64,000 nucleotides of DNA from Stegostoma tigrinum (GCF_030684315.1 NC_081369.1:2284689-2348688), one strand, 5' to 3'. Shown: positions 13,062-56,607, counted from the first letter of the stretch. Numbers and translations: made by a program. Notes: generated by a model from the letters alone, not told the origin.

Positions 13062-13307
13062 TTAGCAATATGATGCGACGCTGGTTTCAGCACGATCGAC
13101 TTCAGTTGATCCGGTTTGCATTGCTGCTTTTAGCTGAGCATACTCTGTGTCCTCATCGTTTAGTTTCAGATTTCTTACTTTGCTGGTGCCATTCAGATCG
13201 AGAGTAGCATACGTCAACCCATCTTCAGCATTCGATTGTTCCATCAATGAAATCAAGTTAGTTAGTTCAATGTTTTTGCCCGTGCGTTGTGTAGTTTTAG
13301 GGGCCAT
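13062..13307 (-). CDS. Gene A last exon: cytoplasmic tail with ITIM (LTYATL) and ITSM-like motif (TEYAQL)
   Basis: 81-aa ORF with LTYATL at 13200-13217 and TEYAQL at 13131-13148. Preceded by a long polypyrimidine tract ending in AA rather than AG. Confidence 0.8.
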   Translation of the reverse strand: MAPKTTQRTGKNIELTNLISLMEQSNAEDGLTYATLDLNGTSKVRNLKLNDEDTEYAQLKAAMQTGSTEVDRAETSVASYC

Positions 13308-14071
13308 TTTGAAAAAGAAAGGAAAACAAAAATAACTAATTTAAAATGCCACCGGCGAGAACATCAGAAAAAGAACATTTGCCTCAAGATGCCCCACTAT
13401 TGAAATAATGATTGCTATTCTTCACTGCATCTTCGCCTGCGCCCTTTTGTCCCAGATTTATTTGTTCTTTTTTAACCAGAAAACACTCGGATTCACCAGT
13501 TGCTGCTTTGCACATTCAAAAAGCCTGACAAAACCTTTCGAAGTTCTGCTGCTCATAACCGTGCTTGCTGCATTGAAAATTTAGTGTCGTAAAACTCCGT
13601 AGAACTTTTAGCATGGTCTAACCCGCTGATAGAAAGTCCTCGAGACAATGAAGTGAACATTAGAAACCATGGTAACTGCTACTTATTGGCTGAAAATTAC
13701 AGGATGTCTCACTTTTTTGAATAGTGACATTGGATTAATTAGTCTGCAATTAGCTTAACGGAGCACTTGCGCCAAATATTGAATTTAGAGAGAGTTCGAA
13801 CAGCACTTTGTTATGTTTCCCAGCACACTTTAGCATAAATCTCTTTTCATCATCTGTATAACGCGTAGGTGTTTGGAAGCCCTTCGTATTTAAAACAGCA
13901 TACAGCATCCTGACATCAACTATGACCCGAAAAGTCTATGGATTTTTCATTGTCGAAATTATATAAAAGATGAATGAGAAAATGCAGAAGGGAACTTTCT
14001 ACGGGATTAATGCAAAATATATTGGGCCTAGTCAGAGCTGCTCAAATTTATTACACACTATTTATTACACA

Positions 14072-14578
14072 CTGGGCGCCCTATTATAGGAAAGATGTGG
14101 ATGCTTTGGAGAGGGTTCAGAGGAGGTTTACCAGGATGCTGCCTGGACTGGAGGGCTTATCTTATGAAGAGAGGTTGACTGAGCTCGGTCTCTTTTCATT
14201 GGAGAAAAGGAGGAGGAGAGGGGACCTAATTGAGGTATACAAGATAATGAGAGGCATAGATAGAGTCGATAGCCAGAGACTATTTCCCAGGGCAGAAATG
14301 GCTAGCACGAGGGGTCATAGTTTTAAGCTGGTTGGTGGAAAGTATAGAGGGGATGTCAGAGGCAGGTTCTTTACGCAGAGAGTTGTGAGAGCATGGAATG
14401 CGTTGCCAGCAGCAGTTGTGGAAGCAAGGTCATTGGGGTCATTTAAGAGACTGCTGGACATGCATATGGTCACAGAAATTTGAGGGTGCATCCATGAGGA
14501 TCAATGGTCGGCACAACATTGTGGGCTGAAGGGCCTGTTCTGTGCTGTACTGTTCTATGTTCTATGTTCTATGTTCTA
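14072..14578 (+). mobile_element. Young 5'-truncated CR1 in a gene A intron (antisense to the gene)
   Basis: Open ORF2 C-terminus (WAPYYRKDVDALERVQRRF...HMVTEI) and a (gttctat)n tail. Nearly identical to 62304-62798. Confidence 0.95.
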
Positions 14579-15103
14579 CTCCAGTATTTATGTACACTTG
14601 CACAGTTCTTTCCAGGTTGACTGATTGTCAGGGTTCAGTAAAATTAGTGAGATACGACTCTTGGCCAGCATTGATATATCAAATAGTGGCTATTTCTCAG
14701 GTGAGATCATATTCAATTTAATTTCAAGCGGGAAAATTTAGCCCATTGAGTTTGAACACATGGTCATAAAAAAAGCCCATTCATATTCACAAAACTCATA
14801 GCAAGATCAGTTGGGCAACATTCTAACAATATTGCTGAATTCTAACATATGCACACTCATCTCTCCAGTGCAGGTTTTTATTTAGAAAGGAAATGAAACG
14901 AAATTTCTTCTTTTCTTCACAATGCCTACAATTCCCCTGTCGTCAAGATGGCAGATCCATGTGAGTATTCAGGGGATGACATACAAAAGTGAAATATGTG
15001 TAACCAAAGTGGAGTTAAAACGAAATGATTTAATTATGCATTTTCAGTGTTGTCTTTTTTTAGACTATTACAGTATGTGCCAAAGTGAATGACATTAACT
15101 TAC

Positions 15104-15147
15104 CATCTCTTCACTATTCACGGAATTTTCCACGTTTTTCTGCATTC
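15104..15147 (-). CDS. Gene A 44-nt cytoplasmic exon
   Basis: tttctag|GA ATG CAG AAA AAC GTG GAA AAT TCC GTG AAT AGT GAA GAG ATG|gtaagt. Phase 1 to phase 0, matching its neighbours. Confidence 0.7.
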
Positions 15148-15598
15148 CTAGAAATAAATGATATTATTATTCCTCCATGTATGTTATATTAAGCTTTCTT
15201 TTTAAAAAAATTAGCAGTAAAATCGCAGATGCTGCAATCTCAAAACTGCTAAACATTACTGCAGATTCCAACAGTACATATTTATTGCTTCAACGAATGG
15301 TTTCCAGTGCGCAACGCCAATTTTAGGCCAACGTGGCTCATGAGAGAAGAACTACCCGCTCAAAGTTTAGGGTACAGAATTGTGGGTAATTATGTTAGTC
15401 AAACTGTGAAAATGACTGGCGTTTAAGAACAGTACAGCAAATTAAACATACAGGCCAATTAAATTATTCTCCTATTCGAAAAGCAAACAAAGGTCAGAAG
15501 GGAAACTTATTATTTCAACAAAACTGATGCTATAATTGTGCTACTTTTTGCTTAGTTATTCTACTCCTTCAGAACCATCTTGTTTCGGCTCTTCTCAC

Positions 15599-15691
15599 TT
15601 TTATCTTTGGGTTTCTTTCGCTGACAGCGGCTCCCAATGATTATGATCAGCAGCATACATATTGAATGGTTGAACGCACTGTCCCTACCAG
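15599..15691 (-). CDS. Gene A transmembrane-like exon
   Basis: ttttccag| ... A|gtgaga, phase 1-1. Encodes AGRDSAFNHSICMLLIIIIGSRCQRKKPKDK, a short hydrophobic run followed by a basic stop-transfer cluster. Confidence 0.55.
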
Positions 15692-16846
15692 CTGGAAAAC
15701 AGATAATGGTGACAAAATCTATTATGTAAGTGTGGCGTGCTAACTCAGATATTTTATGATGAAAATGACAGTGTAAAGCGGAAATATAATGGTTTGAGTT
15801 TTTAGAAGACATAGACTATATGCATGTTCCCAGCGGCTAACATTATATCCGGGAAAAACAATGGTAAATCAAAACAAAATGCTGGGCAAAAAAAACTGTC
15901 AGAAAAAAAACAAAGGTTTAATAAAATTACTACAGATAATACTTTCAGCGAGAGGTGATCACTGAAATATAGCCTGAGGAAGACATGCTTCGAACTAAAT
16001 ACATCATGGTAAATGGCTTCGATAAGAGGTGGGAGAACGGAAAACAGAAGATTGAGAAGCCACATATGATAAAACTTTACATGAGCATAGCAAGATGAAT
16101 GTTTACTAGCGCAGAAAAAATGAGAATGTATACTCAGTGTGAATCGAGCAAAGAGATTGGCAGAAATTTTAATCTTGTGTTACTTTAGGTATAACTACGA
16201 AAGTGGAATACAGCAGGTAATTTTAAAAGGGTATAACACACTGAACGTAACAAAACCGGGAGTTAGGAGTGTTTATCTAAACAGAGACTTGACAAAATAA
16301 ATCTCTAAAAGCTAGTTTGCAAACAGAGATCAATTAATTCATTTGAAAAATAAACTTCCACAATAATCTATGAATGAAGCATATTGGAAACAGTCAATTT
16401 TAGATTTTGCACTGTGTAATGAACTAAAATTATGCCCCTTGGGAAATAAGTGATCATCAATGATAACATCAAAATCTTTAAGATTGACAGAGTTGCTCAT
16501 AAGTTCAAAATGTGGCTGTGAAATATAAAGAAATCCACCATCTGAAGTTGAGTGAGTGAGTCGGCCAAAGCAGATTTCAAAATAGATTTAATAATACAAA
16601 GTTAGGGAATCAAGAGCAATCATTAATTTCAACAAATCCACTTCATTAATGAAAATATTGTTCGCTGGAATATGATAAAACTATAGCCAAAGGGATGAGT
16701 TAAGAAATAGGATGTCAGCACTCTATTTTAGTGCAAATTTGGAATAATACATGCCACATTAGCTGTGTTTAAATGAAGAAATTGACACTATTGCTAATAA
16801 GAAGCAGTAAGCCTAAAGACTGGGGTTGCTTTAAAATCAGTAAAGA

Positions 16847-17150
16847 AATGGTGGCTCAGCAGTTAGCAGCTGCCTCACAGCATCAGGGACCGAGGCACGA
16901 TTCCAGCCTTGGGCAACTGTGTGTGTGGAAAATGCATATTCTCCCCATGTCTATGTGGGTTTCCTCTGAGTGCTCCAGTTTCTTCCCACAGTCCAAAAGA
17001 TGTGCAGGTTAGGTGGATTGGCCATGCTAAATTACCCCATAGAGCTCAGGGATGTGTGGGTTATAGGGGAATGGGTTTGGGTGGGATTCTCTGATGGTTG
17101 GTGTGGACTTGTTGGGCCAAAGGGCCTGTGTCCATGTTGTAGGGATTCTA
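16847..17150 (+). mobile_element. HE1-like V-SINE
   Basis: Diverged copy of 9127-9440. Confidence 0.85.
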
Positions 17151-17570
17151 TTATATACTTTGATCTTCTAAAATACACCAGGACGCAGATTCAGTCTTGC
17201 GCATAGACAAGTAGCAGATATTAGACTGCTTCTCAACAAAGAAAACATAAACAAAATGTGAGCTAGATGCAAGTTCATCTATAAAATGGCAAGGGAATGC
17301 TAAAATCTATTACTAGCAGCAACAGAATAAGACATTTATAAAATGTAATTTTGATGTGCATTAATAAGTAAGCTTTGTTATAGAATAACCTATTTGACAA
17401 ATGTGTTTGAGCATTTTGTTAGTTAAAAACAGATGAATTGACATTTGGAAATTACCAGTATCTTTGTCGAAGATATTTTGAAGGTAATTTTGAATGTTTC
17501 TGAAGCCCAGAGACATCGATAGTGGTCTCGGTGCTGAAAAGCCACATCAATGACTCAGAATCATGAATAG

Positions 17571-17822
17571 GCAGCTCTTGTGATACAATGGGAGTGTCCC
17601 TACCTCTGAACCAAGAGGCCTGGTGTCAAGTCCCACCTGCTCCAAAGGTGTGAAATGACATTTCTGGACAGGTCGTTTACAAAATATCTTTGTGTATGGA
17701 TAAAGGCCTCTTGTGGCACTGTGGTCATGTCCCTATCTCTAGGCTAGAAAATCTGGATTCACATCCCATCTGGTCCAAAGGTGAAGTTATTACATGTCTG
17801 AAACTTGTAAGTCAAAGTATTA
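17571..17822 (+). mobile_element. Tandem dimer of a short tRNA-like SINE unit
   Basis: Two related units of about 120 bp (17571-17690 and 17705-17822) sharing tcttgtg..tgtcccta.ctct..tccca.ctg.tccaaaggtg. Confidence 0.6.
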
Positions 17823-18327
17823 GCAAAGTACTGGGCTTGGAGAGAGAGTGAAAATGCTCAGAACACCAAGGTGGCTTGACAGAATCCAAGATATGTTAGC
17901 AAGTAAAATGAAAAGTTTAAAATCTTTCAAATCTAGCTATCAAACGGATTTCCCTTTTCATTACCACTGAATGGTTGATAATATTTTCACAGATATTGAT
18001 AATTATTTTGGGAGTAACTATCTCATAAAATTGTGCAAATTTTCTGCACTGAAAATATAATTGCACTTTACCAAGGGTTGAATGACAAAGCATCTTTCCA
18101 AAAAGATGCACAACATGTTATGCTCCATAAAGAGTGAAAGAGTGGCAGTGAGCATTGAATTGAGCTTCACTTCACATCTTTCAGGATTGTGTACTGACTC
18201 TGCATCCACTTCTACATATTTATTCTTCTTCTCATTCAAACAATGTTCAACCGAAGAGTGAAATAAAATGTAAATGCACACTGATATAACACAGCTCATT
18301 AGTTTGGAAAGGATGTCAGCAATCTAC

Positions 18328-18627
18328 CTTGCTGTAAATTTGGAACAATAAATGTCATATTAGCTGGAAATGGCAGGGTGATGTGTGATACTTGACACGT
18401 ATAAACAATTCCACTCTGGACAGATTTCAAAAGGCTGGAAACTTTGTAAAGCCCATCTATGTTCAATTCTTTTGTTGTCTCTGGGTGAATTGTAATTTCA
18501 ATTCCATCCTTGTACCATTTCAGAATGAACGCCTCTGAATAAAAATCATTTGTTTCACATGTGAGTTCCAAACGAGTGGAATTCAAGAAAGGCACTTTGG
18601 ACAAAATTCTCAGTGGTGTTGGTGGAA
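18328..18627 (-). CDS. Gene A Ig C1-set domain exon
   Basis: ttttgcag| ... G|gtagat, 300 nt, open. Motifs LTCETNDFYS, KWYKDG, GLYKVSSLL and YTCQVSH. Confidence 0.9.
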
Positions 18628-19317
18628 CTGCAAAAGGGGTAAAAGGCATACTGATTACATTCATTTTATAAGGAATGATTAAATAAACTGTCAATAATCA
18701 ACGGACTTTTGAATAATTGTAACTGAGTTGTATCTAGTGCATAAGGATAATCAGTAAGACTATCTCTTACTCTAATCTAAGTGATATTCAACCCAACATT
18801 GAAATATAATGTAAATACAATTTAGTGTTTTGAGTAAAGTGCAGAAATTTAAGAATAATGGACATGGCTTTGAAAGGTCAACATAAGAATATGTTGGCTT
18901 GAATGCAAAACTGTGTTGTTAGGATGATTTGAAAACGAACAATCAATTCGAACATTTTAATAAATCAGATCAGCATTTATTAGGGCAGAACACCAGGGTC
19001 AGTCCATCATTGTTCCTGAATTGTAATTCAGCCCCAAAAAGAAAGCACCATTTCATTTCAATAACTGTAAAATTCTATTGATATTAAGCACTGAGGTGGA
19101 AACACTTTTTTTGTTTCTTTCAAGGACGTGTTTATTAGTTAACATACCAAATTTCATAACATTGAAGTTGAAGCAGGTAAGAATAGAAGACAGGCATATT
19201 TGAACATAACTAATAAAAGGAACTACATATATTCTGATTTGATAAATTTCTGTAAATGACAACCATGCACCTTGGATAGTGGAGGAGTGTTTAGGGGTTG
19301 CCAAATCCCAAAAAAAT

Positions 19318-20085
19318 ACAAACAGGAAAAGGCTATTCAGCCGCACTATACTGCTCTGCCATTCAACCAGATCACAGCAGATCTTTGGCCCAACTTCATT
19401 TGCCTGACTTGGGCCCATACTGCATGATAACCTTGCTTAATAATAAAAAGAAACCTTATCTCAGATTTAAATTTGACAATTGAGTTGGCATCAACCACAG
19501 TTTGAGAAAGAGTGTTCCAATGCTCCACTACTCTCTACATGTAGAAGCAATTTCTACTATGCCTCCTGAATTGCCTGGTCCTAATTCTTAGACTGTGTCC
19601 CAGTGGAAATAATTTATAATAATAATGTATAATGAACCCAGTTTCTCCCTGGCAATTTCCTGCAAACCTCAATTAGATCCCATTCCTCCCTTAACCTTCT
19701 AAGTTCTAGAGAATAAAGGTCTAACTTGTGGAGTGTCTCTTCAGAACTTAGCCCCCCCCAAGCACAGGTATCATCTTTGTAAGCCTGTGATGAACTCTTT
19801 CCAGGGCCAAAACATCTTTCCTTAAGTGTGGTGCCCAGACCTGCTCACAACACTCCATGGTGATTCTGACTAAGTTTTTGCATAACTGCAGTATAACGTC
19901 TGCATCCCTATACCCCAGCGCTTTAGATATGAAGGCCATGTAGCATTTTAAACTATTTTCTGCACCTGTTCATGACATTTCAAAGAGCTACGCACCTAAA
20001 CCCCAGATCTGGTTGGACACCCATTGCACATAATATTGCGCTTTCTTAAAAATATGTTGATGTATCCTTTTTCAGTCTGAAACAT
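19318..20085 (-). mobile_element. CR1 3' fragment in the gene A V-C1 intron
   Basis: WAPHLRKDVLALERV and WNTLSQTVVDA. Confidence 0.85.
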
Positions 20086-20677
20086 AGCGGGCTCTTCAAA
20101 ATCACACCAAAGCACCCTTACATACAGTGTTCTACATAGATTCAAAGTTTATTTGCACACAGGCCTCATAGAATATTAAAGAAATATGCGTGACAGTGAT
20201 ACATTCCAAACTCTGTCTCAGGATTTATTCACAATTAAGATAAAGTCTCAAATATTTGAGGAAAAATACACAACATCATTTGATTTCTGACACTAACCTA
20301 GAAATATGTAGAGAAAAGCATTGAAGTTAAAGGAACACTTCAAGGTTCTGCTGAGGGTCATTTAAATTAATTTAGGGATACTAATGTTGGAACAAGCGTG
20401 CTATTTCAAATAAGCATAGAATAAACGTCGAACAAACTTCTTCATATGTTGGCTTCACTGACTTTTATACAAATAAACAATTAAACAATGTTGAATTGGT
20501 ATATGGATAGCGGAGTGAGAAGGTGAGATGTCTCCCCCAAAAGTACGGTTCAATTCGACTGTGCCCTACGTTCAGACGAATGGATTGAGTCTGCACTTTG
20601 AGAAGAGAATTTTACTTTTGCATCAGACCAAAGTTTCTTTACCTTTACTACCCGCCCCGAACCACATCTTCACTTAC

Positions 20678-20998
20678 CGAATACTTTCACGGTTGAGCCA
20701 GTTCCATTTACAATGCTGTTTCCCAGGGTTTTCACGCCCCACACATACATCCCGAAATCCTGTGCACTGATGTTCAGGAGATGAAAGGAGCCGCCTCCTT
20801 GTTTAAAAAAGCGAAATACGTTCCTGTTGCCTGAGGTTCTTTGCAGAAATTTACTTTCGCCAAGTTTCCACCAATAAATCTCGACACTGGGATTATCTTG
20901 AAAAATGGGAAATGTGCAGTAGAAGGTAACGTTTGAACCTACTCGAGCGTTCGTGCTTTCAGGCACCTGGAGGACTTGGAAATGAGCCCGAACTGCAG
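20678..20998 (-). CDS. Gene A Ig V domain exon with germline J-like motif; F-strand Cys replaced by Trp
   Basis: ttctggtag| ... G|gtaagt, 321 nt, open. HFQVLQVP..NVTFYCTF..IYWWK..DFGMYVWGV..NGTGSTVKVF. Confidence 0.9.
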
Positions 20999-21132
20999 CT
21001 ACCAGAAAATAGAGGAGTAACTATGAGTTAGATGTAAAACAGGGGCAATGAAGAGACAGTTAACAGGTCGTTAAAGAAGCAAATTTTGGTTTGATTGTAA
21101 ACATGGAAGCAAAACAAAGGTATAGAAAATAC

Positions 21133-21186
21133 CTTAGTAACGAATGACCAGAATCACAGCAAAAGATGGACGTCGTGCAGAGACAT
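21133..21186 (-). pseudogene. Gene A leader-like exon with disrupted frame
   Basis: Donor G|gtattttct is identical to the gene B leader donor and intron sizes are similar (134 vs 144 nt). The ATG frame hits TGA and the phase-1 frame ends in TAA. Confidence 0.55.
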
Positions 21187-21454
21187 GCTGAATAATAAGT
21201 CTTCATAAATAATTCTGAAGAAGGGTCAGCGGACTCCAAGCTCTTGTTTTGTCTCTACAGATGCTGTTAGAACTTCACAGATCCTCCAGCAGTTTTTAAA
21301 ATTTTCTATCTTAAATATTCATCTCTTTCCTGCCGATTAACGTTCTTATTTAAATGGAAACCTATTCACATCACCTGACGTGAGCAAGAGGAAATGGCAT
21401 TCATTGTCGATGAGCAGAATTGGAATTATGAAAAGACGTGCCTAGCATCAGTGA

Positions 21455-21975
21455 TATAGAATCATAGATTCATACAACACGGGAACGAAGACTTCGGTCC
21501 AAATGGTTCACGCTGACTAGATATTTGCCAGCACTTAACCAACATCGCTCCAATCCCTTCTTATTCATGTACTCATCCGGATGCCTCATAAGTGGTGCAA
21601 TTGTATCCAGCTCCACCACTTCCTCTGGCAGTTCGTTTCCATGTACGCACCAATCTCTGCGTGAAAGAGTTAACCCTCAGGTCCTTTTAAATTGTTCTCC
21701 TCTCACTTTACATGTATGCACTCTAGTTTTGAATTTCCCCATCATAGGAAACAGATATTGGCTTATTCACGACAGCAAAGTGTGGAGTTGGATGAACACA
21801 GCAGGCCAAGCAGCATCTCAGGAGCACAAAAGCTGACGCTTCGGGCCTAGACCCTTCATCAGAAAATGGGGATGGGGAGAGGGTTCTGAAATAAATAGGG
21901 AGAGGGGGGGAAGCGGACTGAAGATGGATATTCACCCTATCCGTGCCTCTCATGATTTTATACACCTCTATAACA
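21455..21975 (-). mobile_element. CR1 3' fragment interrupted by a Penelope pLTR (about 21771-21929)
   Basis: YKIMRGTDRV at 21930-21965, with pLTR sequence gagttggatgaacacagcagg...cccttcatcag inserted. Confidence 0.8.
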
Positions 21976-22878: not shown

Positions 22879-23120
22879 ATGTCATGACTTCTGCCAGAGA
22901 GTGGTGGGCTTGTGGAATTCATTGCCACGGAGTGCAGTGGAGACCAGGACGTTAGATGCCTTCAAGGCAGAGATCAACAAATTCTTGATCTCACAAGGAA
23001 TCAAGGGCTACAGGGAGAGTGCAGGGAAGTGGAGTTGAAATGCCCATCAGCCATGATTTAATTGGCAGAGTGGACTTGATGGGCTGAATGGCCTTACTTC
23101 CACTCCTAGGTCTTATGGTC
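22879..23120 (+). mobile_element. CR1 3' end
   Basis: FCQRVVGLWNSLPRSAVE followed by the 3' UTR. Confidence 0.85.
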
Positions 23121-23124
23121 TTTT

Positions 23125-24600: not shown

Positions 24601-24616
24601 GTGAACAATGGTTTCA

Positions 24617-24834: not shown

Positions 24835-24848
24835 AGTGAACAATGGTT

Positions 24849-25034: not shown

Positions 25035-25174
25035 CAGTCAACAATGGTTTCATAGTTATTATTAAATTCTTAATATTGAGTTAAAATCCATCATTTGCCA
25101 TGGCAGGATTCAAACCTGGATCCTGGAAAATTCCCTGAGTTTCTGCTTCAATAGTTTGACAATAATACTACTTG

Positions 25175-26185: not shown

Positions 26186-26605
26186 CTAAACTTGCTGCAG
26201 TTGCCTGCATTTGGTCACACGTATAAATTTTAAACTGAATGGCTGTAACACTAAACATTTAAACAGTCTGGTATTTTTATCTTTACATTTTTCCAAAAAC
26301 ATTAAGTGATCATGATCAGCATATACAACAGTCTCAGACACATTACTGACAACATAAATGTTGAAATGTTGCAATGCCAACACCAAATTCAATGTCTCCT
26401 TCTCAATTGTGGAATATTTCTGTTGATTAATATTCACCTTTCTGGAAAAATACCCAATAGGCCCGCCTATCTTCTTGTTATCTTTATGCAAGAGTATAGC
26501 ACTGACAGCCACATAGCTCACATCAAAAGACACCTTGAATAGCTTTCCATAATTAAGTATATCTAACAATGGGGCAGTGGTTAACAGAGCTTTCAGCCTC
26601 TTTTA
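26186..26605 (-). mobile_element. Gypsy LTR retrotransposon RNase H fragment
   Basis: DVSYVAVSAILLH..PIGYFSRK..QQKYSTIEKETLNLVLAL..VYADHDHL. Confidence 0.88.
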
Positions 26606-41311: not shown

Positions 41312-42946
41312 AGAGGGGGATGAGGTGAGGGTTCTGGAATAAATAGGGAGAGAGGGGGAGGCGGACCGAAGATGGAGAGAAAAGACGATAGGTGGAGAGA
41401 GTATAGGTGGGGAGGTAGGGAGGGGATAGGTCAGTCCAGGGAAGACGGACAGGTCAAGGAGGTGGGATGAGGTTAGTAGGTAGGAGATGGGGCTGCGGCT
41501 TGGGGTGGGAGGAAGGGATGGGTGAGAGGAAGAACAGGTTAGGGAGGCGGAGACAGGTTGGACTGGTTTTGGGATGCAGTGGGTGGAGTGGAGGAGCTGG
41601 GCTGGTTGTGTGGTGGTTCATCCACTTCACCAACACCTTCCACCCCAACCTTCAGTTCACCTGGGCCATCTCCAGCACATCCCTCACCTTCCTGGACCTC
41701 TCAGCCTCCATCTCAGGCAGCCAGCTTGTAACTGATGTCCATTTCAAGCCCACCGACTCCCACAGCTACCTAGAATACACCTCCTCCCACCCACCCTCCT
41801 GCAAAAATTCCATCCCCTATTCCCAATTCCTCCGCCTCCGCCACATCTGCTCCCACGACAAGACATTCCACTCCTGCACATCCCAGATGTCCAAATTCTT
41901 CAAGGACCGCAACTTTCCCCCCACAGTGATCGAGAACGCCCTCGACCGTGTCTCCCATATTTCCCGCAACACGTCTCTCACACCCCGACCCCGCCACAAC
42001 CGCCCAAAGAGGATCCCCCTCATTCTCACACACCACCCCACCAACCTCCGGATACAACGCATCATCCTCCGACACTTCCGCCATCTACAATCCGACCCCA
42101 CCACCCAAGACATTTTTCCATCCCCACCCCTGTCTGCTTTCCGGAGAGACCACTCTCTCCGTGACTCCCTTGTTCGCTCCACACTGCCCTCCAACCCCAC
42201 CACACCCGGCACCTTCCCCTGCAACCGCAGGAAATGCTACACTTGCCCCCACACCTCCTCCCTCACCCCTATCCCAGGCCCCAAGATGACATTCCACATT
42301 AAGCAGAGGTTCACCTGCACATCTGCCAATGTGGTATACTGCATCCACTGTACCCGGTGTGGCTTCCTCTACATTGGGGAAACCAAGCGGAGGCTTGGAG
42401 ACGCTTTGCAGAACACCTCCGCTCAGTTCGCAACAAACTACTCCACCTCCCAGTTGCAAACCATTTCCACTCCCCCTCCCATTCTTTAGATGACATGTCC
42501 ATCATGGGCCTCCTGCAGTGCCACAATGATGCCACCCGAAGGTTGCAGGAACAGCAACTCATATTCTGCCTGGGAACCCTGCAGCCTAATGGTATCAATG
42601 TGGACTTCACCAGTTTCAAAATCTCCCCTTCCCCAACTGCACCACACAACCAGCCCAGCTCCTCCACTCCACCCACTGCATCCCAAAACCAGTCCAACCT
42701 GTCTCCGCCTCCCTAACCTGTTCTTCCTCTCACCCATCCCTTCCTCCCACCCCAAGCCGCAGCCCCATCTCCTACCTACTAACCTCATCCCACCTCCTTG
42801 ACCTGTCCGTCTTCCCTGGAATGACCTATCCCCTCCCTACCTCCCCACCTATACTCTCCTCTCCACCTATCTTCTTTTCTCTCCATCTTCGGTCCGCCTC
42901 CCCCTCTCTCCCTATTTATTCCAGAACCCTCACCCCATCCCCCTCT

Positions 42947-42974: not shown

Positions 42975-43404
42975 AGCTTTTGTGCTCCTGAGATGCTGCT
43001 TGGCCTGCTGTGTTCATCCAGCCTCACATTTTGTTGACTCTGTCTGACTCTTTCACTGTTTTCCAAGTGCTGCAACTGCATAATGGACTCTGGCATTTTT
43101 AATGATAAAAGGCTAACTGGTATATAATTTCACAGTTTATAATTTTCTATAATTTTGCTTCTTAAAACTGACATTTTCTCAGCTGCCATCAATTCTCAGG
43201 AAGTGTCACTGTACCGAAATGTTAACTCTGATTTGCCCTCACAGATGCTACCAGGCCTGCTGAGCTTTTTGAGCAATCTGTTTTTTTTTGTTGCTGTTGT
43301 CATATAATTTCCCCGGTTTCTCTTTACACCCTGTCTTTTTTAATTGTGAATTACATTGCTGTTCGTCAATCCCTGGAAAATTTTCCTGGATACCTAGTCT
43401 TGAA

Positions 43405-44543
43405 GAAATGCGGAGGAATGGAATTTGTACAAAATGCGGAGGAATGAAATTGTGGGAGATATAGGAGTTTGGATCGGAAATTGGCTTGCTGAAAGAAGAC
43501 AGAGGGTGGTCGTTGATGAGAAATGTTCATCCTGGAGAGCAGTTACTAGTGGTGTACCGCAAGGGCCAGTGTTGGGTCCACTGCTGTTTGTCGTTTTTAT
43601 AAATGACCTGGATGAGGGCGTAGAAGGACAGGTTAGTAAATTTGCAGACGACACTAAGGTTGGTGGAGTTGTGGATAGTGACGAAGGATGCTATAGGTTG
43701 CAGAGAGACATAGATAAGCTGCAGAGGTGGGCTGAGAGGTGGCAAATGGAGTTTAATGCAGACAAGTGTGAGGTGATGCACTTTGGTAGAAGTAACCAGA
43801 AGGCATATACAGGGCTAATGGTAAGATTCTTAGTAGTGTAGATGAGCAGCGAGATCTCGGTGTACGTGTACACAGATCCTTGAAAGTTGCCACCCAGGTT
43901 GACAGGGCTGTTAAGAAGGCATACAGTGTTTTAGCTTTTATTAAAAGAGGGATCGAGTTCTGGAACCGAGAGGTTATGGTGAAGCTGTACAAAACTCTGG
44001 TGCGGCCGCACTTGGAGTATTGTGCAAAGTTCTGGTCACCGCATTATAAGAAGGATGTGGAAGCTTTGGAAAAGGTGCAGAGGAGATTTACTAGGATGTT
44101 GTCTTGTATGGAGGGAAGGTCTTACTTGGAAAGGCAGAGGGACTTGAGGCTGTTTTCCTTAGAGAGAAGAACGTTGAGAGGTGACTTAATTGAAACATAT
44201 AAAATAATCAGAGGGTTAGATATGGTGGATAGGGAGAGCCTTTTTCCTAGGATGGTGACGGCGAGCACGAGGGGGCATAGCTTTAAATTGAGGGGTGAAA
44301 GATATAGGACAGATGTCAGAGGTAGTTTCTTCACTCAGAGTGTATGAAGGGAATGGAACGCTTTGCCTGCAACGGTAGTAGATTCGCCAACTTTAGGTAC
44401 ATTTAAGTCGCCACTGGATAAACATATGGACGTACATGGAATAGTGTAGGTTAGATGGGCTTGAGATCGGTATGACAGGTCGGCACAACATCGAGGGCCG
44501 AAGGGCCTGTACTGTGCTGTAATGTTCTATGTTCTATGTTCTA
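43405..44543 (+). mobile_element. Fairly young 5'-truncated CR1
   Basis: SGVPQGPVLGP, KFADDTKV, RPHLEYCAKFWSP and a (gttctat)n tail. Confidence 0.95.
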
Positions 44544-47239: not shown

Positions 47240-50200
47240 TGGACTGGCAACATCAAATTGGTAGCAGATCCCAAGGAAATGAATTTGTGGAATATCTAGC
47301 AGATGTTTTTGGGAGCATCCTATGATAAAGCCTAATAGTGAACAAGCAATTCTAGATTTGGTGATGTGTAATGTGGCAGGCTTAATTAGGGAGTTGAAGG
47401 TGAAAGAACCCTTCATGGGGAGAAACCAAAACATGGTTCATGTGTGGAATGAAGTGCCAGGGAAAGTTGCGGATGCAGGTACAGTCACAACATTGTAAAA
47501 ACATTTGGACAAGGTCATGAAAAGCAAAGGTTTGGGGTAATATGGACCAAGTGCATGCAGGTGGGACTAGAATTTACATTGCAGCATGAGAGGGGGAAGC
47601 TGGAATTGAGTAAAAGTAACTACAAAGACATGAGGAGGAGATGGCCAGAGTTGATTGGAAGGGGAGCCTACCAGAGAGGATGGCAGAGCAGCAATGGCAG
47701 GAGATTCTGGAGGTAATTTGGGAGGCACAGCAGAAATTCATCCCAAGGAAGAAGGAGCATACTAAAAGGAGAACGAAGCAACCAAATCTAACAAGAGAAA
47801 TCAGGGACTACATAAAAACAAAAAGAATAATCATACACTGTAGTAAAGAGTATTGGGAAAGCAGAGCATTGGAAGCCTTTATAAACTAGCAGAGAATAAA
47901 TAAGATAGCAATAAGGTGGGAGAAGATGAAATATTACAATAAGCTAGCTAGTAATATAAAAGAAGATTGCAAGAGGTTTATATAGATATGTAAAAAGTTA
48001 GAGAGAGACAAGAGTGGACATTGGACTGCTGAAAAATGAAGCTCGAAAAGCTGGAACTGCTAAGGTACTTTGCATCAGTCTTCAAGGTGGAACACACCAG
48101 CAGCACGCCAGAACTTCAAGAGCGTAGGGGCACAGGTGCGTGCAATGGTTATTATTCAGGAGAAGGTACTGGAGATGTTGAAAGATCTCAAGATGGACAA
48201 ATCACCCAAACTAGATTGACTACACCCCAGAGTTCTGAAGGAGATAGCACAGGAGATTTTGGAGGCATTACTGGTGATCTTTCAGAAATAACAGGAGCCA
48301 GGGGGAGTCTCGGAGGACTGGAAAATGACTAATGTAACAACCCTATTTAAGAAGACAGAGGGGCAGAAGACAGGAAACTATACACCAGTTAGCCTGAACT
48401 CAGGCTTTTATAAGATTTTAGAATCCACTCTTAAGGGTGAGATTGGGGAGTCGATTCATGGACTCATTCAGTACGGAAACAGATCCTTTGGCTCAACAAG
48501 TCCACGCCAACTATGTTCCCAAACTAGTCCCACCTGCCTGCACTTGCCCATATGACTCAAAACCTTTGCTATTCATGAACTTATCCAAATGTTTTTACAA
48601 TGTCATGTTTCACCTGCATTCACAACTTTCTCTGGCATTTCATTCCACACATGAACCACTCTCTGTGTTCAAAATTTGTCCCTCATGCCCTTTTTAAAGC
48701 TTTCTTCTCTCACCTTAAAACTATGCCCCCAAGTTTTGTATTACCCAACCCTAGGAAAAGACATTTGCCATTCACCTTATCTATGCCCCTCATAATTATA
48801 CAAAATGCAATAAGGTCACACCTCAACCTCCTACACTCTAGTGAAAAAAGTCCAAGCCCTTCCAGTCTACTTTTATATTTCAAACCCTCCATTCCCAGCA
48901 ACATCGTGATCAGTTTTTTTTTTCCGAATCCACTCCACTTTAATAATATCCTTCCTTTAGCAGTCCAACTAGAACTGGAGTCTCCAAAAGAGGCCTCACC
49001 AACGTACTATGCAACATCAACATGATGTCTCAACCACAACACTCAAAGGTCTGAGCAATGATAGCAAGGCTGTTAAATGCCTTCTTAACCACCCTGTCTA
49101 CTTGTGATACAAATTTAAAAGAATTATGTATGTGAACCCCTTGGTCTTTCTGTACTACAACACTACCCAGAGCCCTACAATTAATTGCAAATGTCTTGTC
49201 CTTGTTGTAATATCAAAATACAATACCTCACTATTATCCAAATTAGATTTGTCCTACAACTCCACAGCCCATTAACCCAATTGAACAAGAGTTCTTTGTA
49301 ATCTTAGAGTGCTTGGTAATGTAAAATAGGCCTGATCAGCACAGGGGAGGTCATGTCTGATAAATCTGTTAGAATTTTTTCATCAGTTAATGAGAAAGTT
49401 AGACAAAAAAGATGTGGTTTTCTTGGATTTCAGGAAGACCTTTATCACAGAAGGCTGCTAAATACAATAAGAGCCCATGGGCTTAGGAGCAAGACACTGA
49501 TGTGGATGAAGGATTGGCTGACTGGCAGGAGGCAGAGAGAGAAAGGCTAAAATGATCTTTTTGCAAGAGAATGCCCAGTGACTGGTTTAGTTCCATTAAA
49601 GCCAGCATTCGGACCACAACCATTCATGTCCTACAATAATAACCTGGATGAAGGAACTGAGGTCATTGCTGCTAAGTTTGCAGAAAGGTAGTGTTCAGGA
49701 AATGGGAAGGCTGCAGAAGGACTTGGGCAGGCCATGAGAGCAGGCAAAGGAATGGCATTTGGAATACAATGTGGGAAACTGTGAGATTATGTGTTTTGTT
49801 AGGAAGAATAGATTTAAGGACTATTTTCTAAATGGGGAAAGTTTTCAGAATTATGTAGCATAAAGGGATTTAGGAGCCCTCATTCAGGATTCTTTTAAGA
49901 GTCATATGCAGGTTCAGCTGGCAGTTAGGAAGGCAAATGCAATGTTAGCATTCATTTCAAGAGGGTTAGAAAGGTCTGACGAAGGGCCTGGGCCCAAAAT
50001 GCCAGCCTTGCTGCTCCTGTGATGCTGCTTGACCTGCTGTGTTCATCCAGCTCTACACCTTGTTATTGCTACAATACATGTGGGGCGATGTACTGCTGAG
50101 GCTGTGTGCAGTGTTTGGAATATTCGGTGAGCAGCTTTGGGTCCTGTGTCTAAGGACAGATTTGTTCTGGAGGAGGTTTATAAAAATGTTCCTGGAGATG

Positions 50201-50660
50201 AAGGGACTGCCATATGAGAAGTTGAGGATTCTGGATCTATACTCAGTGAAGTTTAGAAGGTGTGTGTGTGTGTGTGGGGGGGGGGGTGGTGGGGGGGTTG
50301 ATCTTAATAGAACTTACAGAATATTGAGGGGCTTGAATAGCATGGACATAGTGAAGAGGGTTCCAGTAGTAGAAGAGACATGCACCAGCCCACAGAACTG
50401 CATAGTGAAAGAATGACCCTTTAGAACTGAGATTAGAAGGGGTTTCTTCAGTCAGGGTTGTTAATCTGTGGAACACATTGCTTCAAAAGGCTGTAGAGGC
50501 CATGCCATTGAGTGCATTTATTACAGAGATAGTTTATTGCTTAATAGGGTGATCAAGAAACATGGGAAGAAAACAGGAGTTTGGGTTTGAGAAATAGATC
50601 AGCCATTATTGCATTGCAGAGCAGACTTGTTGGGCCGAATGACTGAATTCTGGCGCTGTA
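47240..50660 (+). mobile_element. Old long CR1 with a nested antisense CR1 (about 48455-49305) and a pLTR (about 49974-50066)
   Basis: EN/linker/RT remnants (ANVT-like TNVTTLFKK..GNYTPVSL; WMKDWLTGRRQR). Minus-strand LGLFSLECRRLRCDL at 48710-48904. Confidence 0.85.
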
Positions 50661-51717
50661 TTTTATGGCCTTCTGGTCTTTTACGGCTGAATCAGAATTC
50701 AGTTGGCACATTTTCCACATTCCGCCGTTATATCAAGCGCAAAGCAAATGCTGTCGTATCGGCATTAACGGGATTCATTGTTGGACTATAGTCCAAGCAG
50801 TCCATGCCAAACATAATTCCAAACTTAACGAGCCCCACTTGCCTGCTTTGGTCCATATCTCCCCTTTCTTATACATGTACTTATCTTGATCTTGTTTGAA
50901 TGTCGTAACTGTACCGGCATCCACCAGTTTCTCTGGAAGTTCATTCTACACAAAGAACCATTCTCTGTTTAAAAAAAACTCTAAAAAATGCTTATTGTTG
51001 AAATTCCTTCTTCTTACATTAAATATTTTTCTGGTAATTATATTTATATATTTTCGAAACAATAACTTGTTAGGAGACTTCTTTTGTCATATTTTATTTC
51101 ACGGCAACATACCCCTTAATAATTCCAGCTTTCTCGAATTCAGTCTTGTTTTGTTTTTTGTGTTTTTAAAATTATTAGTTTACCGTCTTTATGTTCACCC
51201 TGTGTTGCCGTTTAATTTAAATTGAGAACTTCTAGCTTTCAGCAGCCCCATTCATTCATTCATTATGCACTGTAGAACAATCTCCGGCCGCTTTATTCGG
51301 ATTTCTCGTTATAAAATTGCTTGCATAAACAACTTATACCGGATATAATGCGGTTTGCAAATTTAGATGTTCAAATTCCCCCTGTTTTGATGCGTCAGCA
51401 TGTTATTTTGTCATTTTGATGCTTCCGATAGCCTATGGCAAGAATATTTTAATTTCCACTTCAGTATGTTGACATTATCTTATTAACCTATTAGCGTAAA
51501 TTTACCAGCAGGAGGCGTCAATCTCTCAGGTACTATGTTTATCGTGACCTTGTTCTGCTTAAACACGTTAGGATGGGACAGTCTCATTCGATGGAAAATC
51601 AGTTGAGAAAATGTGAAAACATCACTTCCATATCTTCTCTCCAGATTTGCCTGCAAATGTTACGCATTTAAGTGCAATATTCATGGAGTGTTTCGTAAAT
51701 GACATTTTGGTATCCTG

Positions 51718-51926
51718 GGATAACCGAGTGTGGAGCTGGAGGAATACGGCAGGCCAGGCAGCATCAGAGGAGCAGGAAAGTTGACGTTTGTGGTCGTGAT
51801 CCTGCTTCAGAAATCGTCCCGACCCAAAACGTCAACTTTCCGGTTCTTCTGATGCTGCCTGGCCTACTGTGTGCATCCAGTACACTCTGTTATCACTGAC
51901 TCCACCATGTGCAGCTCTTGTCATCT
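51718..51926. mobile_element. Fold-back Penelope pLTR element
   Basis: Inverted arms with an imperfect TSD, cattttgg..tcctg, at 51703-51717 and 51927-51941. Confidence 0.8.
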
Positions 51927-52679
51927 CATTTTGGGTTCCTGCCCGCTACTCGGCTTCTGGATTCATATATACTTCGCTGAGGATTCCCAACATTCTGCGG
52001 GGTAAGGCAACCCCCAGGAATCACAATTAACTCTCAATAGTTTGGTTCTCTATTTGATTTGACGCCAGTTGAGCCAGAAATCCCACTGTTTACTGATCGT
52101 GGGATAAATATTATTGGTGACTGCCTATTCACCCTTTTAAATTTAATAGAATAGTGACTTCTTTGCTGCGACTTTGGAAAGTCAGTCTGGAGAGCACCAT
52201 CAGGAGTTCCACGAGATTTATAGCCTGTACTTTTGTTAAAGGTTATAAATGTTCACTTAACACGTGAGCAGTTGCAGATATCGCATGGGCCATTGTTGTG
52301 ACAAAATATAGAGGAATTTTCCAAAGAACAGGAATCGGACATGATGGGTTTCAGTGGTCATCCATTATAAACTTCGCTATTTTAATCTGAAATGTGGTTA
52401 AAATCTAATAAAAGTCTTGGGTGCAATTTAATTCGGAATGTAAGCCGCTTTCAAAGCAAGCCTTGATTTCCGTTTTAAACAAGTCGCCGAATTACTTCGG
52501 TTTTGTGCTTCTGGGTGGTAAACATCGCAGCAGCGCTGCGGTTTATAAGATTTCGAGAAATCATACTTTCCTATGTTGGTAATAGCGCAGGGTGTCACAC
52601 GTTAAACTTTTGTGGCGAGGGAACGGGAGATCGCATAAACCGCATTCAAATTCTCAGCTGAATATCTATCATTGAGCAC

Positions 52680-53725
52680 AAGGTACCATCTTTAAAGGAA
52701 GTAATAGCACACTTAGAAAATCCTAATAGAATTAAGCAAGGTTATGCGTTATATTTCTTTTTCAAAGGGATAATAGTATTTTACACAGAATTTAGATTTA
52801 TTTGAGGCCTGGCCAATTAGAGCCAAAGGTACAGCGAAAAACTGATCGAAAAACATCCTACTATCTCTTAAACGGGAATGGACAGTTTAATTGAAAATGA
52901 AGAAATTAAGCAGATGGGTGAATCATCTGAGGAACGATGATGTGGTCAACTTTGGTGGGAATAAGAGAAATCAGAAAGTGATTTAATTAGTTGGAGGCTA
53001 CAACATTCTGTAGAGCACAGGGATCTCCATGTCTTTATCAGAAAACGCGAGTTAGTGCTCAGAAACAGCAAGCATTTGGTGGCAGAATGAGTCTTTATAG
53101 ATTGGGAGATTTAGTGCAAATGGAGGGAAGGGACATTGATGAGTTCGGAGCCAGAGACAACGACAAGTTTGATCCCCTTAACAAGTGATATACTTCCATT
53201 AGAAATATTGCACATGAGGTTGTGTAGCTTGATACTTGGAACAAGTGTGTTGTCTACTAGGAAATCTTCCTACTGTGTGCAAGGGAAATTAGAAGATTGA
53301 GAAGACTTCTTGTTGAACCATTTAGGTTCCCGAGGTTTTGAGTGGTTGCGTAGCGAATGAATAAATGTATGCTAAGTACACGCTTGCTCTTTTGAGAGAC
53401 CCTCCAAGCAGAGGGTAAGTGGTGGGACAATGTTTAAAATAGAGGAAGAATATTTAACACGGAGATTAGGAAGATTTGTTTTCTTGGAAAAGGTGTCTTT
53501 CAGAATTCTCTACCCAGGAGAGCAGTGAACATCTGGTTTTTGAATATATTGAAAGCAGAACGACATAGATTTTTGATTTACAAGTCGATCAGAAGTTGTG
53601 GCGGTGTGTATTAAGAGAAAGTGGGAATCAGTCCAAAATCAGATTCTTGTACTTATTCAGTGGCAAAGTAGGCTCGCGTGTTCAACTTGTCTACTCCTAA
53701 TCCCATTTCCTATGACGTTATGTTC
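52680..53725 (+). mobile_element. Very old degraded CR1
   Basis: Remnants of RT motifs and the 3' UTR (cagaattctctacccaggagagcagtg; ctactcctaatcccatttcctatg). Confidence 0.55.
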
Positions 53726-54143
53726 TTAATGTCCAACCTAAAACAATCTACTGTAGGGTGTAAATACATCACAGTTTCTGCTGATGAAAATCAGAATAAA
53801 GTTACACTGAAATCGAGTACAGATAACAAGAAAACACCACACGTTCGCGCGTATAAAAGACAACCCATTTAAAACTTGCTTACTTTACATCACCTGCAGG
53901 AACAGGGACAGATGTAACAATCAGCTCGTTGCTGTATTTCCAGCACTCTGTAGTTTTAGTTTCAGCATTCGCAGTACTTCACGGTTTCTCTTTCGACTTG
54001 TCATCACTTTATTTGCACTTCACCAGTTCTTTCATGATAGGACATATGCAAACCAGTAAAATCTCACGCCATCTGTGGCCTCTCTGTACACATTCACTGC
54101 AGCATTCGTCTGTTGGCAAGAATTGATTCTTCCTTCACCCAAT

Positions 54144-54189
54144 ATGATTATGCTGCAGCGCATGTTGGTCCTCGAAATGATCTCAATAG
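54144..54189 (+). CDS. Gene B leader (signal peptide) exon
   Basis: ATG at 54144, MIMLQRMLVLEMISI, then G|gtattt (phase 1). Splices in frame to the V exon across a 144-nt intron. Confidence 0.75.
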
Positions 54190-54333
54190 GTATTTTCTGG
54201 GAAAAAGAATTAAAACCGTCTTAATATTTATTCATGTTAGACTTATCAATCTATCTTTTTAGGAGTTTCCAAGTCAGATCTCAATGTTGAATTAATGGAA
54301 TGCATTATTTTTCTTTCTCTTTTTCTTTGAAAG

Positions 54334-54651
54334 CTTTTTGCTATCCCCATTTCCAGGTGTCACAGAAGCCTCAACGCATTATTCGGAATTTCGGTGAAAA
54401 CATAACCATCACTTGTGCTTTCAGTATTCTGTCTGATGATTCAGAGGTGAGAGTCTTCTGGTGGAAACTTGGCGATAAAGCACTTCTGCATCCTATCTCC
54501 GAGGCTAGGAAACAGCATTTTAAGAGAAAGGGCCAGGGCACCTTACAGCTCATTGACATCCGTCTTGAAGATGCTGGAGTTTATTACTGCGGAGTTAGTC
54601 GAAATAGCGGGACGATTATCAACGGGACTGGAACTGCACTTGTTGTCTACC
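54334..54651 (+). CDS. Gene B Ig V domain exon with germline J-like motif
   Basis: Polypyrimidine tract and aag| ... C|gtaagt, 318 nt. HFQVSQKP..NITITCAF..VFWWK..LQLIDIRLEDAGVYYCGV..NGTGTALVVY. Confidence 0.93.
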
Positions 54652-54962
54652 GTAAGTGGCATTGTAGGTGAAGGAATTGTTAGAAATTTCGATACATTGT
54701 TTAGCCGATTAATAATATTGAAGGACATTATGCTGGAAATCATAGCGGGGTCAGGCAGCATCCATGAAGAGAGAGCAAACTATGGTTTCAAGTCTAGATG
54801 ATGCTTCATCAGGGCATTCATTGCAGAATGTTGTCATGTTTACATCATAGCAATGCCAAACAGGGCAGGAAGATTAGTAAAATCTCGAAAAAAAAATTCA
54901 ACAGCAATTATGCATATCCGATCGAGTTAACATGCGTTTAACGCGAAATGATTGAGAAGTTA

Positions 54963-55076
54963 AGATAATAAAATGTGAGGCTGGATGAACACAGCAGGCC
55001 CAGCAACAGCTTTTCCTGCTCCTCTGATGCTGCTTGGCCTGCTGTGTTCATCCAGCTTCACACCGTGTTATCTTGG
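54963..55076. mobile_element. Short fold-back Penelope pLTR element
   Basis: gctggatgaacacagcaggcc ... ggcctgctgtgttcatccagc. Confidence 0.8.
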
Positions 55077-55714
55077 AAACAATGTATTCTTTTTTATCTA
55101 ACGAAACCATTATTGTGGGACATGCTCCGTTCTGTTACATATCCTAATGAATCAAATCATCAAATTCTTTAATATTGACCTCATAACAAAATGAACTGAA
55201 ATGATTTAACCACTTTACAGTGAAGTCGATTAGGCTGCCAACAAATTTATGCATTGTTTTACTGGTGAAAATCCGAGGAAGAGAACTGTTCCAGGGTGCT
55301 CTGAATGACCTCCGATTATGCAGTTAATATATTTCCAAAAGAATATGCTCAAATTGTTATCTTCATCTGAGCTGGTGACACATTTTTCTCCTAATGATTT
55401 AAGCGGGAAGTTCAGGAATAGTAGTTGATAAGGCTAAACAACCAAACATCTGAGGGGACTGAAATAAAATGAAGCAAAAGGGCGTTCATGTTTGTTTGTT
55501 TTTTCTCGTGTTTAGCCCAAAGTGTAAGGAAATATTTTATCAACAAGCACGGAATTTCCCAGAACAATTTATATCCATGATTCATACAACATTCCATTAT
55601 TCTAGAAATTGATGGAGTTGTAAGGTTATTATGGCAGTTGCTGTTAGACTTGTGCATCTGAGGTCAGAGTGTTACCAGTTTGCTTTTCTCTAGTGAATTA
55701 ATCCCATACAATGA

Positions 55715-56100
55715 AGGAATAGATCGCCACAGTGCAGAAAAGCTGATTCGGCCGATCGAGTCGGCACCGACCGTCCGAAATTCATCTCACCCAGACCCAC
55801 TTTATCGCCCACTTTATCTCTGATTCCTGTAGTGTATTAGAAGTTCGATACAGCTTCGCTTTGATCGAGCGTACTTGCATGACTATTCCACTTAAACAGC
55901 ACATCCCTGTGTGCTACGGGGCAATTTAGTATGGTCAATCCGCCTAAACTGCACATCTTTGGACTGTGGGAGGAAGTCGGGGCACCAGAAGGTAACCCAC
56001 GCAGGCATGGAGAGAATGTGCAAGCTCCACACAGACAGAAGCTAGAATCGAACTCCCCACCCCGGCGCTGTGAACCAGCGATACTAACCACCAGCCGCCC
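55715..56100 (-). mobile_element. HE1-like V-SINE
   Basis: Reverse-complement V-domain (tgcacatctttggactgtgggagg...tgcaagctccacacagac) and tRNA head. Confidence 0.85.
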
Positions 56101-56295
56101 CAATTAAATAGCACTACCAGTGAATTGCGCAAAATTTTTGCGTTAATCAAATAATTGGCTCAACATTGAGTGACTGTTGTGAAACTCTTATTTTCCAAAT
56201 TAATAAAGCAGTACTCAGCATTATTCATTGGTTATGAGATATAATGATGTTCTAAATCGACAGCGCTGAACGATGTTATTTTAATCCCATTACAG

Positions 56296-56607
56296 ATCCA
56301 CCATCTACCCCTACCATACTTTCCAAAACACCTGATGGAAATTCAGACGTCTATCTACGTCTCGTATGTGAAACAGTTGACTTTTACCCAGCGACGATTG
56401 CATTCAACTGGTACAAAAATACAAGCAAGATTGTCACCGGGATAAAAACAACACAGAACTTGACCGATGCGGGGCTTTATCGAGCTTTCAGTACTCTACA
56501 GGAATCACAGCCGATCCAGAAAGGCACCCCTTATGTTTGTTTGGTATCTCACAATGCTACCCGGAGTTGGAAATTGTCTGTTTATTTGATGTCAAGTTCG
56601 ACCTCAG
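56296..56607 (+). CDS. Gene B Ig C1-set domain exon
   Basis: tacag| ... G|gtagga, 312 nt, open, phase 1-1. PPSTPTILSK..LRLVCETVDFYPATIAFNWYKN..GLYRAFSTL..YVCLVSH. Confidence 0.92.

Follow-up and report, generated by a model that had tools for sequence, protein, structure and literature searches.

The 64,000-nucleotide stretch of zebra shark (Stegostoma tigrinum) DNA analyzed here (GCF_030684315.1 NC_081369.1:2284689-2348688; called the window below, with positions counted from its first letter) carries a divergent, head-to-head pair of genes about 33 kb apart, gene A on the minus strand and gene B on the plus strand. A preliminary description of the window had presented them as two paralogues, on opposite strands and with four immunoglobulin (Ig) exons between them, of a non-rearranging receptor type in which a variable (V) domain with a germline-joined J-like strand is followed by a constant domain of the C1 set; direct reading of the DNA together with tblastn confirms this layout. 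Identity between A and B amounts to 37% in the V exons (E 8e-22) and to 42% in C1 (E 3e-14), values that argue for paralogy well beyond chance. Pfam recognizes V-set domains in both V exons (gene B, E 1.3e-8; gene A, E 4.6e-6) and C1-set domains in both C1 exons (gene B, E 1.9e-11; gene A, E 4e-10). The exon lengths first given (318 nt in gene B and 321 nt in gene A for V, 312 and 300 nt for C1) and the common leader donor gtattttct proved correct, and a six-frame motif scan recovered all six signature motifs (HFQV.Q.P, WWKLG, NGTG[ST], PP.TP..ILSK, CET.DFY and Y.C.VSH), each at the position and on the strand claimed for it. In both genes V and J form a single open exon that terminates in a splice donor, and a scan around both genes for the heptamer/spacer/nonamer pattern of a recombination signal sequence (RSS) found none in 54000-56700 or in 18200-21300, in agreement with the original account of a J-like strand lacking an RSS. 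No further exons of this type were found in the 33-kb spacer between A and B.

Gene B is an intact gene. Its leader exon (54144-54189, plus strand, 46 nt) encodes MIMLQRMLVLEMISI plus one nucleotide and ends in phase 1, with the donor gtattttct at 54190. The VJ exon (54334-54651, 318 nt, phase 1 to 1) contains WWKLG, YYCGV and the J-like strand NGTGTALVV, and is followed by the C1-set exon (56296-56607, 312 nt, phase 1 to 1). All three are 100% identical to the database protein P0184, which is RefSeq XP_059507768.1 from S. tigrinum (the leader to residues 1-15, the C1 exon to residues 123-226); as a sequence, gene B is thus not new, since a RefSeq model already exists under the machine-given name 'natural cytotoxicity triggering receptor 3 ligand 1-like'. 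Beyond C1, P0184 continues into a transmembrane (TM) helix (ILAIGCAVSGLVCLLLVAVIGKRC) and then a tail with the tyrosine motifs LGYAAL and, 23 residues on, THYAAI, the first an immunoreceptor tyrosine-based inhibitory motif (ITIM) and the second similar to a switch motif (ITSM). Searches of 56608-64000 by tblastn with P0184, P0183 and P0008, and by motif scans, found no TM or tail exon of gene B; the exons for its TM helix and ITIM/ITSM tail therefore lie beyond 64000, outside the window. An AlphaFold2 model of P0184 (mean predicted local distance difference test score, pLDDT, 79.5) shows two confident Ig domains and the TM helix. A complex predicted for two copies of P0184 residues 20-226 scored 0.01, which is evidence neither for nor against a homodimer. 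The 7 kb after the gene B C1 exon are crowded with reverse-transcriptase fragments.

Gene A can be followed on the minus strand from leader to stop codon. A leader remnant (21186-21133, 54 nt) starts with ATG at 21186 and ends at a gtattttct donor; its translation, MSLHDVHLLL*FWSFVT, is colinear with the leaders of orthologues (MSMHDVCILLWITSILF; P0154, MSMHDVCILLW...). The VJ exon (20998-20678, 321 nt) is open for 106 codons and has the J-like strand NGTGSTVKV, and the C1-set exon (18627-18328, 300 nt) is open for 100 codons and keeps both cysteines and the tryptophan. The TM exon (15691-15599, 93 nt, phase 1 to 1) encodes AGRDSAFNHSICMLLIIIIGSRCQRKKPKDK and matches the stop-transfer sequence IIG[SKR]xC of related proteins; no second C1 exon was found between the C1 and TM exons. 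The cytoplasmic exon (13306-13062) is open for about 80 codons down to the stop TAA at 13064-13062 and encodes an ITIM, LTYATL (13217-13200), and an ITSM-like motif, TEYAQL (13148-13131), with their tyrosines 23 residues apart. It is the sole ITIM/ITSM tail inside the window.

Five lesions are distributed over these exons. The leader has TGA at codon 11 (21156-21154), where orthologues carry W or R, and its phase-0 end does not fit the phase-1 start of the V exon; the initial statement that all exons are in phase 1 accordingly holds for the leader, V and C1 exons of gene B but not for the gene A leader, which also contains the stop. In the V exon the second canonical cysteine, that of the F strand, is replaced by tryptophan (TGG at 20741-20739), although this cysteine is invariant in 56/56 members of the family described below. 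The TM exon encodes only 21 residues before IIGSRC, compared with 31 in orthologues; it is thus 10 codons short, and about 12 hydrophobic residues are left. Finally, the tail exon, whose match to the tails of P0155, P0154 and P0043 begins exactly at 13306, is preceded by a long pyrimidine tract and then by AA at 13308-13307 instead of an AG acceptor. Each lesion taken singly is open to doubt, and it is because of the five combined that gene A is most likely an unprocessed pseudogene; the earlier picture of a functional gene pair in the zebra shark genome is not upheld. The open V, C1 and tail frames are compatible with a fairly old decay in a slowly evolving genome.

None of the protein collections searched contained an identical match to gene A. 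The closest is P0037 of Heterodontus (70% identity in V, 66% in C1), followed by P0155 of Heptranchias (68% and 66%) and by P0043 of Mustelus and P0154 of Scyliorhinus torazame (63% and 58% for both). P0037 (XP_067905015.1, Heterodontus francisci) is itself unusual: about 125 of its N-terminal residues match the reverse transcriptase of long interspersed nuclear elements (LINEs) in the window (tblastn, 61759-62040 and 43479-43769), and it has the short-tail TM segment of another subfamily, so that it is probably a mis-joined model.

Trees were built separately for the V and C1 domains. In both, gene A falls in a starred clade (98* in each) with A-type genes of Heterodontus, Heptranchias, Mustelus and Scyliorhinus, while gene B falls in a starred clade of ten members (99* in the V tree, 98* in the C1 tree) whose topology roughly follows shark phylogeny. 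A and B represent separate orthologue groups that split anciently. As the same species and clades recur in the V and C1 trees, the two domains share one history, which in turn favors a single gene containing both; the same is suggested by RefSeq models from more than 15 species in which V is joined to C1. Orthologues of A and B are adjacent in S. torazame (XP_072322905/06; scyTo_0008068/69 on one 353-kb scaffold) and near-consecutive in Heptranchias (XP_067853500/02) and Mustelus (XP_078066426/31), an adjacency read from the order of accessions and locus tags rather than from DNA. Since they are neighbors in these three genera, the A-B pair is probably old and, by accession order, syntenically conserved in at least three other sharks. 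In searches of limited reach no A-clade protein was retrieved from any orectolobiform shark, and this absence fits a loss of A in Orectolobiformes. Within the B group conservation is lower in V than in C1 (for example, 52% vs 72% identity with Chiloscyllium, 51% vs 65% with Mustelus), while in the A group V is conserved as much as C1 or more; the divergence of V in the B group hints at faster evolution of a ligand-binding face.

To place the pair in a wider setting, the gene B V exon was compared by phmmer with 1.84 billion representative proteins. Among the matches is a set of single-V proteins of 230-420 aa whose common architecture is V, C1, TM and cytoplasmic tail, and about 70 proteins at the level of the family come from ten shark genera, several rays and skates, and the chimaera Callorhinchus. 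No member from outside the cartilaginous fishes was found by the V-domain phmmer search or by word-indexed searches, limited in reach, with P0043 and family alignments. A profile search and a search with the C1 region in a collection of 5.8 billion proteins likewise returned family members only, again within the reach that a word index allows. Domain hidden Markov models (HMMs) derived from the family give its members more than 90 bits in V and more than 88 bits in C1; the best non-members in the hit list (reptile IgSF3-like and pIgR-like proteins) stay under 58 bits and lack a C1 domain.

Strand C of the family V domain holds WW and strand F holds YYCG, and the G strand is of the NGTG type; the V exons of both A and B score as members, that of A differing in the W at its F-strand cysteine. 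The J-like strand, N-G-T-G-[ST]-x-L-x-V, is well conserved among 56 sequences (N in 51, G in 54, T in 46, G in 56, S or T in 55, L in 48 and V in 52). It corresponds to the GxGTx(L/V)xV core of the J consensus (PMC11599192), with N in the position of the aromatic residue before GxG; this substitution creates an NGT sequon for N-glycosylation, which is usual in the family. The C1 domain is encoded by the next exon, which starts PPxTP..I and holds C.T..FYP, W[YF]K and C.VSH, as do the C1 exons of A and B. In long-tailed members the TM segment ends in IIG[KRS]xC and is followed by an ITIM and, 23 residues later, an ITSM-like motif; gene A has this arrangement with a shortened TM exon, and gene B has it by way of P0184 only. 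About half of the members carry the ITIM and ITSM-like pair; in the others the tail is 3-50 residues long and has no such motif. No interchain-disulfide cysteine is present in the membrane-proximal stretch of the family sequences read. Seven short-tailed proteins (P0028, P0162, P0163, P0165, P0167, P0168 and P0135) share the TM segment [HP]RF[IV]L.FL.IL.L..II[VA][ED]H, in which the cytoplasmic end bears an acidic residue and a central basic one is missing, an unusual arrangement for presumed activating partners.

These results bear out the proposal that the genes belong to a cartilaginous-fish family with a germline-joined VJ domain, a single true C1-set domain and a TM segment, and also its characterization as poorly described: RefSeq applies to its uncurated models at least eight mutually inconsistent machine names (SIRPα-like, SIRPβ-like, tapasin-related-like, Ig λ-like, CD276 homolog, NCR3LG1-like, butyrophilin-like and MHC class II β-like), and no paper describing the family was found in the literature searched, some key subscription papers being outside its reach. 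As for the proposed signaling through ITIMs, about half of the members read carry an ITIM and ITSM-like tail, with the qualification that the only ITIMs within the window are those of gene A. Taken as a whole the original observation is real and was correctly seen, and its interpretation is largely correct and partly supported.

The relationship of the family to known Ig-superfamily proteins was analyzed with a profile made from 35 members and searched against all PDB sequences. The top match is a chain with a λ light chain as its first 200 residues, followed by UrIg2 (9dmx, E 7e-35), SIRPα third (2wng, E 2e-33) and, further down, SIRPγ (4i2x, E 5e-30). When V and C1 are aligned contiguously, λ and κ light chains score 69.7 and 70.6 bits and the first two domains of SIRPα (d1-d2, residues 3-205) 69.8 bits, with 48.8 bits for SIRPα d3; in UrIg2 three C domains score 53, 31 and 35 bits and the V domain -2 bits. 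A Foldseek search with the predicted structure of P0184 gave Ig light chains for all of the top 50 PDB matches, which agrees with the description of the genes as shaped like a single light or T-cell receptor (TCR) chain, and the VIA non-redundant structural search did not discriminate, with B7-family, NCAM-type, IgNAR and antibody chains all tied at Z 14-15. By profile the family ectodomain is about equally distant from Ig light chains and from SIRPα. As the scores for SIRPα and for λ and κ are equal, the analysis does not show that the family stands in any particular relation to the ancestor of rearranging receptors, as had further been suggested, and a shark SIRP-like family is as good a reading as a light-chain-like one.

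The explanation that best accommodates these observations, and which we regard as very probable, is that the zebra shark locus holds one intact gene (B) and one unprocessed pseudogene (A) of a cartilaginous-fish family of VJ-C1-TM receptors. How that family relates to known receptors admits several answers. It is possible, though we consider it the lesser prospect, that the family is the cartilaginous-fish orthologue or co-orthologue of SIRPα/β, with the third domain lost or never gained, and hence a known family under poor annotation. The contiguous d1-d2 alignment, the high rank of SIRPα and SIRPγ among PDB chains, the many RefSeq models named 'tyrosine-protein phosphatase non-receptor type substrate 1-like' or 'signal-regulatory protein beta-1-like', and the coexistence of long ITIM tails with short tails, as in SIRPα and SIRPβ, all favor it. 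However, λ and κ light chains score equally well, and the proteins, of about 260-400 aa with one V and one C1, lack the three-domain form with two C1 domains. Moreover, no SIRP of a bony vertebrate is found among the 150 best V-exon matches, and tandems of ITIM and ITSM are common to many unrelated receptors.

It is rather unlikely, in our estimate, that the family is a separate and ancient VJ-C1-TM lineage restricted to cartilaginous fish, neither SIRP nor B7, in which case it would be a membrane-bound, ITIM-signaling relative of the light-chain/TCR-chain design that predates or parallels the RAG invasion, with the A-B pair as the relic of a two-chain arrangement. It is retained for consideration because the profile is equally distant from Ig light chains and SIRPα, because a member is present in Callorhinchus, and because A and B are adjacent across shark orders.

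A different kind of doubt concerns gene A. Were both genes functional, A would employ another leader exon or its oddities would be tolerated, and the two would form a working pair, possibly a heterodimer. The absence of stops from the V, C1 and tail frames of A agrees with this, as does the identity of A to its orthologues (70% in V and 66% in C1), which is as high as that of B to its own. Yet five independent lesions at functionally critical points, including loss of an invariant cysteine, make it improbable; moreover, the collections searched contain no protein model for gene A, and short exons may stay open by chance in a slowly evolving shark genome.

There is little likelihood that the genes encode ligands of the B7 family, similar to B7-H6 (NCR3LG1), rather than receptors. 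The NCR3LG1-like name that RefSeq gives to gene B and several relatives suggests it, and the VIA search ties the structure to B7-H6, B7-H3, PD-L1/L2 and butyrophilins at Z of about 14-15, alongside many two-Ig proteins. These structural scores are ties without discrimination, however, and the machine name alone favors B7-H6. The 60 PDB chains that score best with the profile (all with E <= 2.7e-25) include SIRPα, UrIg2 and light chains but not B7-H6. Pfam assigns the C domains to C1-set at E 1e-10 to 1e-11, as against 0.06 for the CD80-like C2-set_2, in gene A only, and the conserved GxG of the J-like strand together with the ITIM and ITSM tandem fits a receptor. Membership in the lineage of UrIg and UrIg2, the non-rearranging shark 'antibodies', is hardly credible: UrIg2 is the second-best PDB chain, and both are elasmobranch genes with non-rearranging VJ and C1 (PMC12227049), but the UrIg2 score comes from C domains and not from V, and the secreted UrIg carries three C1 domains and UrIg2 carries 9-11 C domains (PMC12227049), as against one C1, a TM segment and ITIMs in the family. 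A rearranging Ig light or TCR chain was rejected, V and J being one open exon with no RSS in the stretches scanned.

If the locus is read as one intact receptor gene with a decayed neighbor, the product of gene B is a type I membrane receptor with a signal peptide, a V domain, a C1 domain, one TM helix and an ITIM/ITSM tail, in which the V domain would bind some ligand and the C1 domain would act as a stalk. Upon phosphorylation LGYAAL and THYAAI would recruit a tandem-SH2 phosphatase, SHP-1 or SHP-2, whose action would damp activation as it does for SIRPα, PECAM-1 and PD-1. Inhibitory signaling is the most likely function of gene B because of the ITIM/ITSM pair and the spacing of its tyrosines. 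In PECAM-1, SIRPα, PD-1 and Siglecs the tyrosines are 18-30 residues apart, a range that includes the 23 residues of this family. Short-tailed relatives might serve as activating or decoy partners.

Several points weigh against this account and its extensions. A search of sequencing runs for zebra shark transcripts found no RNA run that contains the locus; the runs that contain it, with 97-99% of sampled words, are of DNA only. The restriction of the family to Chondrichthyes rests on a V-domain phmmer search and word-indexed searches of limited reach, and pairing of activating with inhibitory members is unproven, the short-tailed proteins lacking the classic central TM Lys or Arg. As for gene A, its lesions come from one assembly and from comparing its amino acids with those of orthologues; open frames persist in V, C1 and the tail, and a leader further upstream may have gone undetected.

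The remainder of the window is rich in mobile elements. A GC-rich element of about 1.4 kb (41419-42836) encodes the same peptide of about 60 residues (GGDRS.QGRRTGQGGGMRLVGRRWGCGLGW...) at both ends on opposite strands, and therefore has long inverted terminal repeats; its internal open frame of 356 aa has no Pfam match. Retroelement remains at 61354-62712 (plus strand), 43404-43838 (plus) and 26189-26602 (minus) comprise two LINE-type RVT_1 fragments (E 6e-22 and 8e-16) and one RNase H of a long terminal repeat (LTR) retrotransposon (E 2e-19). Many additional reverse-transcriptase-like open frames are found in the A-B spacer, in the intron after the gene B C1 exon and in the intron between the TM and tail exons of gene A (13974-14480). 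The first 4 kb (1-4000), with strongly positive GC skew (0.28-0.35), AT skew, and long low-complexity Ser/Leu-rich open frames on both strands, looks like a stretch rich in simple repeats.

Genes with non-rearranging VJ and C1 have become topical through work on UrIg and UrIg2 in sharks (PMC12227049, PMC10751288), and they are the leading candidate relatives of the gene that the RAG transposon had entered. A multigene VJ-C1 family with inhibitory tails, spread over the cartilaginous fishes, would add a branch of membrane receptors to that small set, and would offer shark immunology a candidate checkpoint family of SIRP-like type whose ligands can be tested. For the locus itself the outcome is a correct naming of gene B and the recognition of its neighbor as a pseudogene; the family is uncharacterized and merits a proper description, to which the zebra shark locus adds a member and not a new kind.

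The family resembles several known systems in some features and departs from them in others. It shares with B7-H6 and other B7 proteins an ectodomain of V and C and a single TM helix (structural Z 14.7, a tie with many two-Ig proteins), but profile similarity to them is below that to SIRPα and Ig light chains, and the shark C domain is a clear C1-set domain in Pfam. B7 V domains generally have no J-like strand. With UrIg and UrIg2 it shares elasmobranch genes of non-rearranging VJ and C1 type, its C1 scoring 53 bits against a C1 of UrIg2. UrIg is a secreted protein with three C1 domains, and the C domains of UrIg2 number 9-11 (Flajnik et al. 2023, 2025; PMC12227049); unlike the shark family, which has one C1 and a TM segment, neither carries ITIMs, and their V domains are not specifically similar. 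PRARP, NKp30 and NITR, listed in PMC11599192, are non-rearranging VJ receptors, some of them with ITIMs; PRARP is also cited in PMC10751288. These receptors resemble the family in having a germline V domain of VJ type in a membrane receptor. A C1 domain is not known in PRARP or NKp30, and NITRs, known from bony fish only, have an I-type and not a C1 domain in second position. Ig light chains (λ, κ) have the same V-J-C1 layout of two domains and the J-like strand GxG[TS]xLxV, but in the shark family V and J are one germline exon without an RSS, the protein is anchored in the membrane with a signaling tail of its own, and the membrane-proximal cysteine for an interchain disulfide is absent. SIRPs, lastly, are type I membrane proteins in which C1 comes immediately after a non-rearranging V domain that has a J-like GxGT strand, with pairs of ITIM and TEYA-type ITSM in the inhibitory members and with short-tailed members, as in the shark family; SIRPs differ from it in having two C1 domains, and SIRPα two ITIM pairs, where the family has one of each, and in keeping before GxG the aromatic residue that in the shark family is N, giving the NGT sequon.

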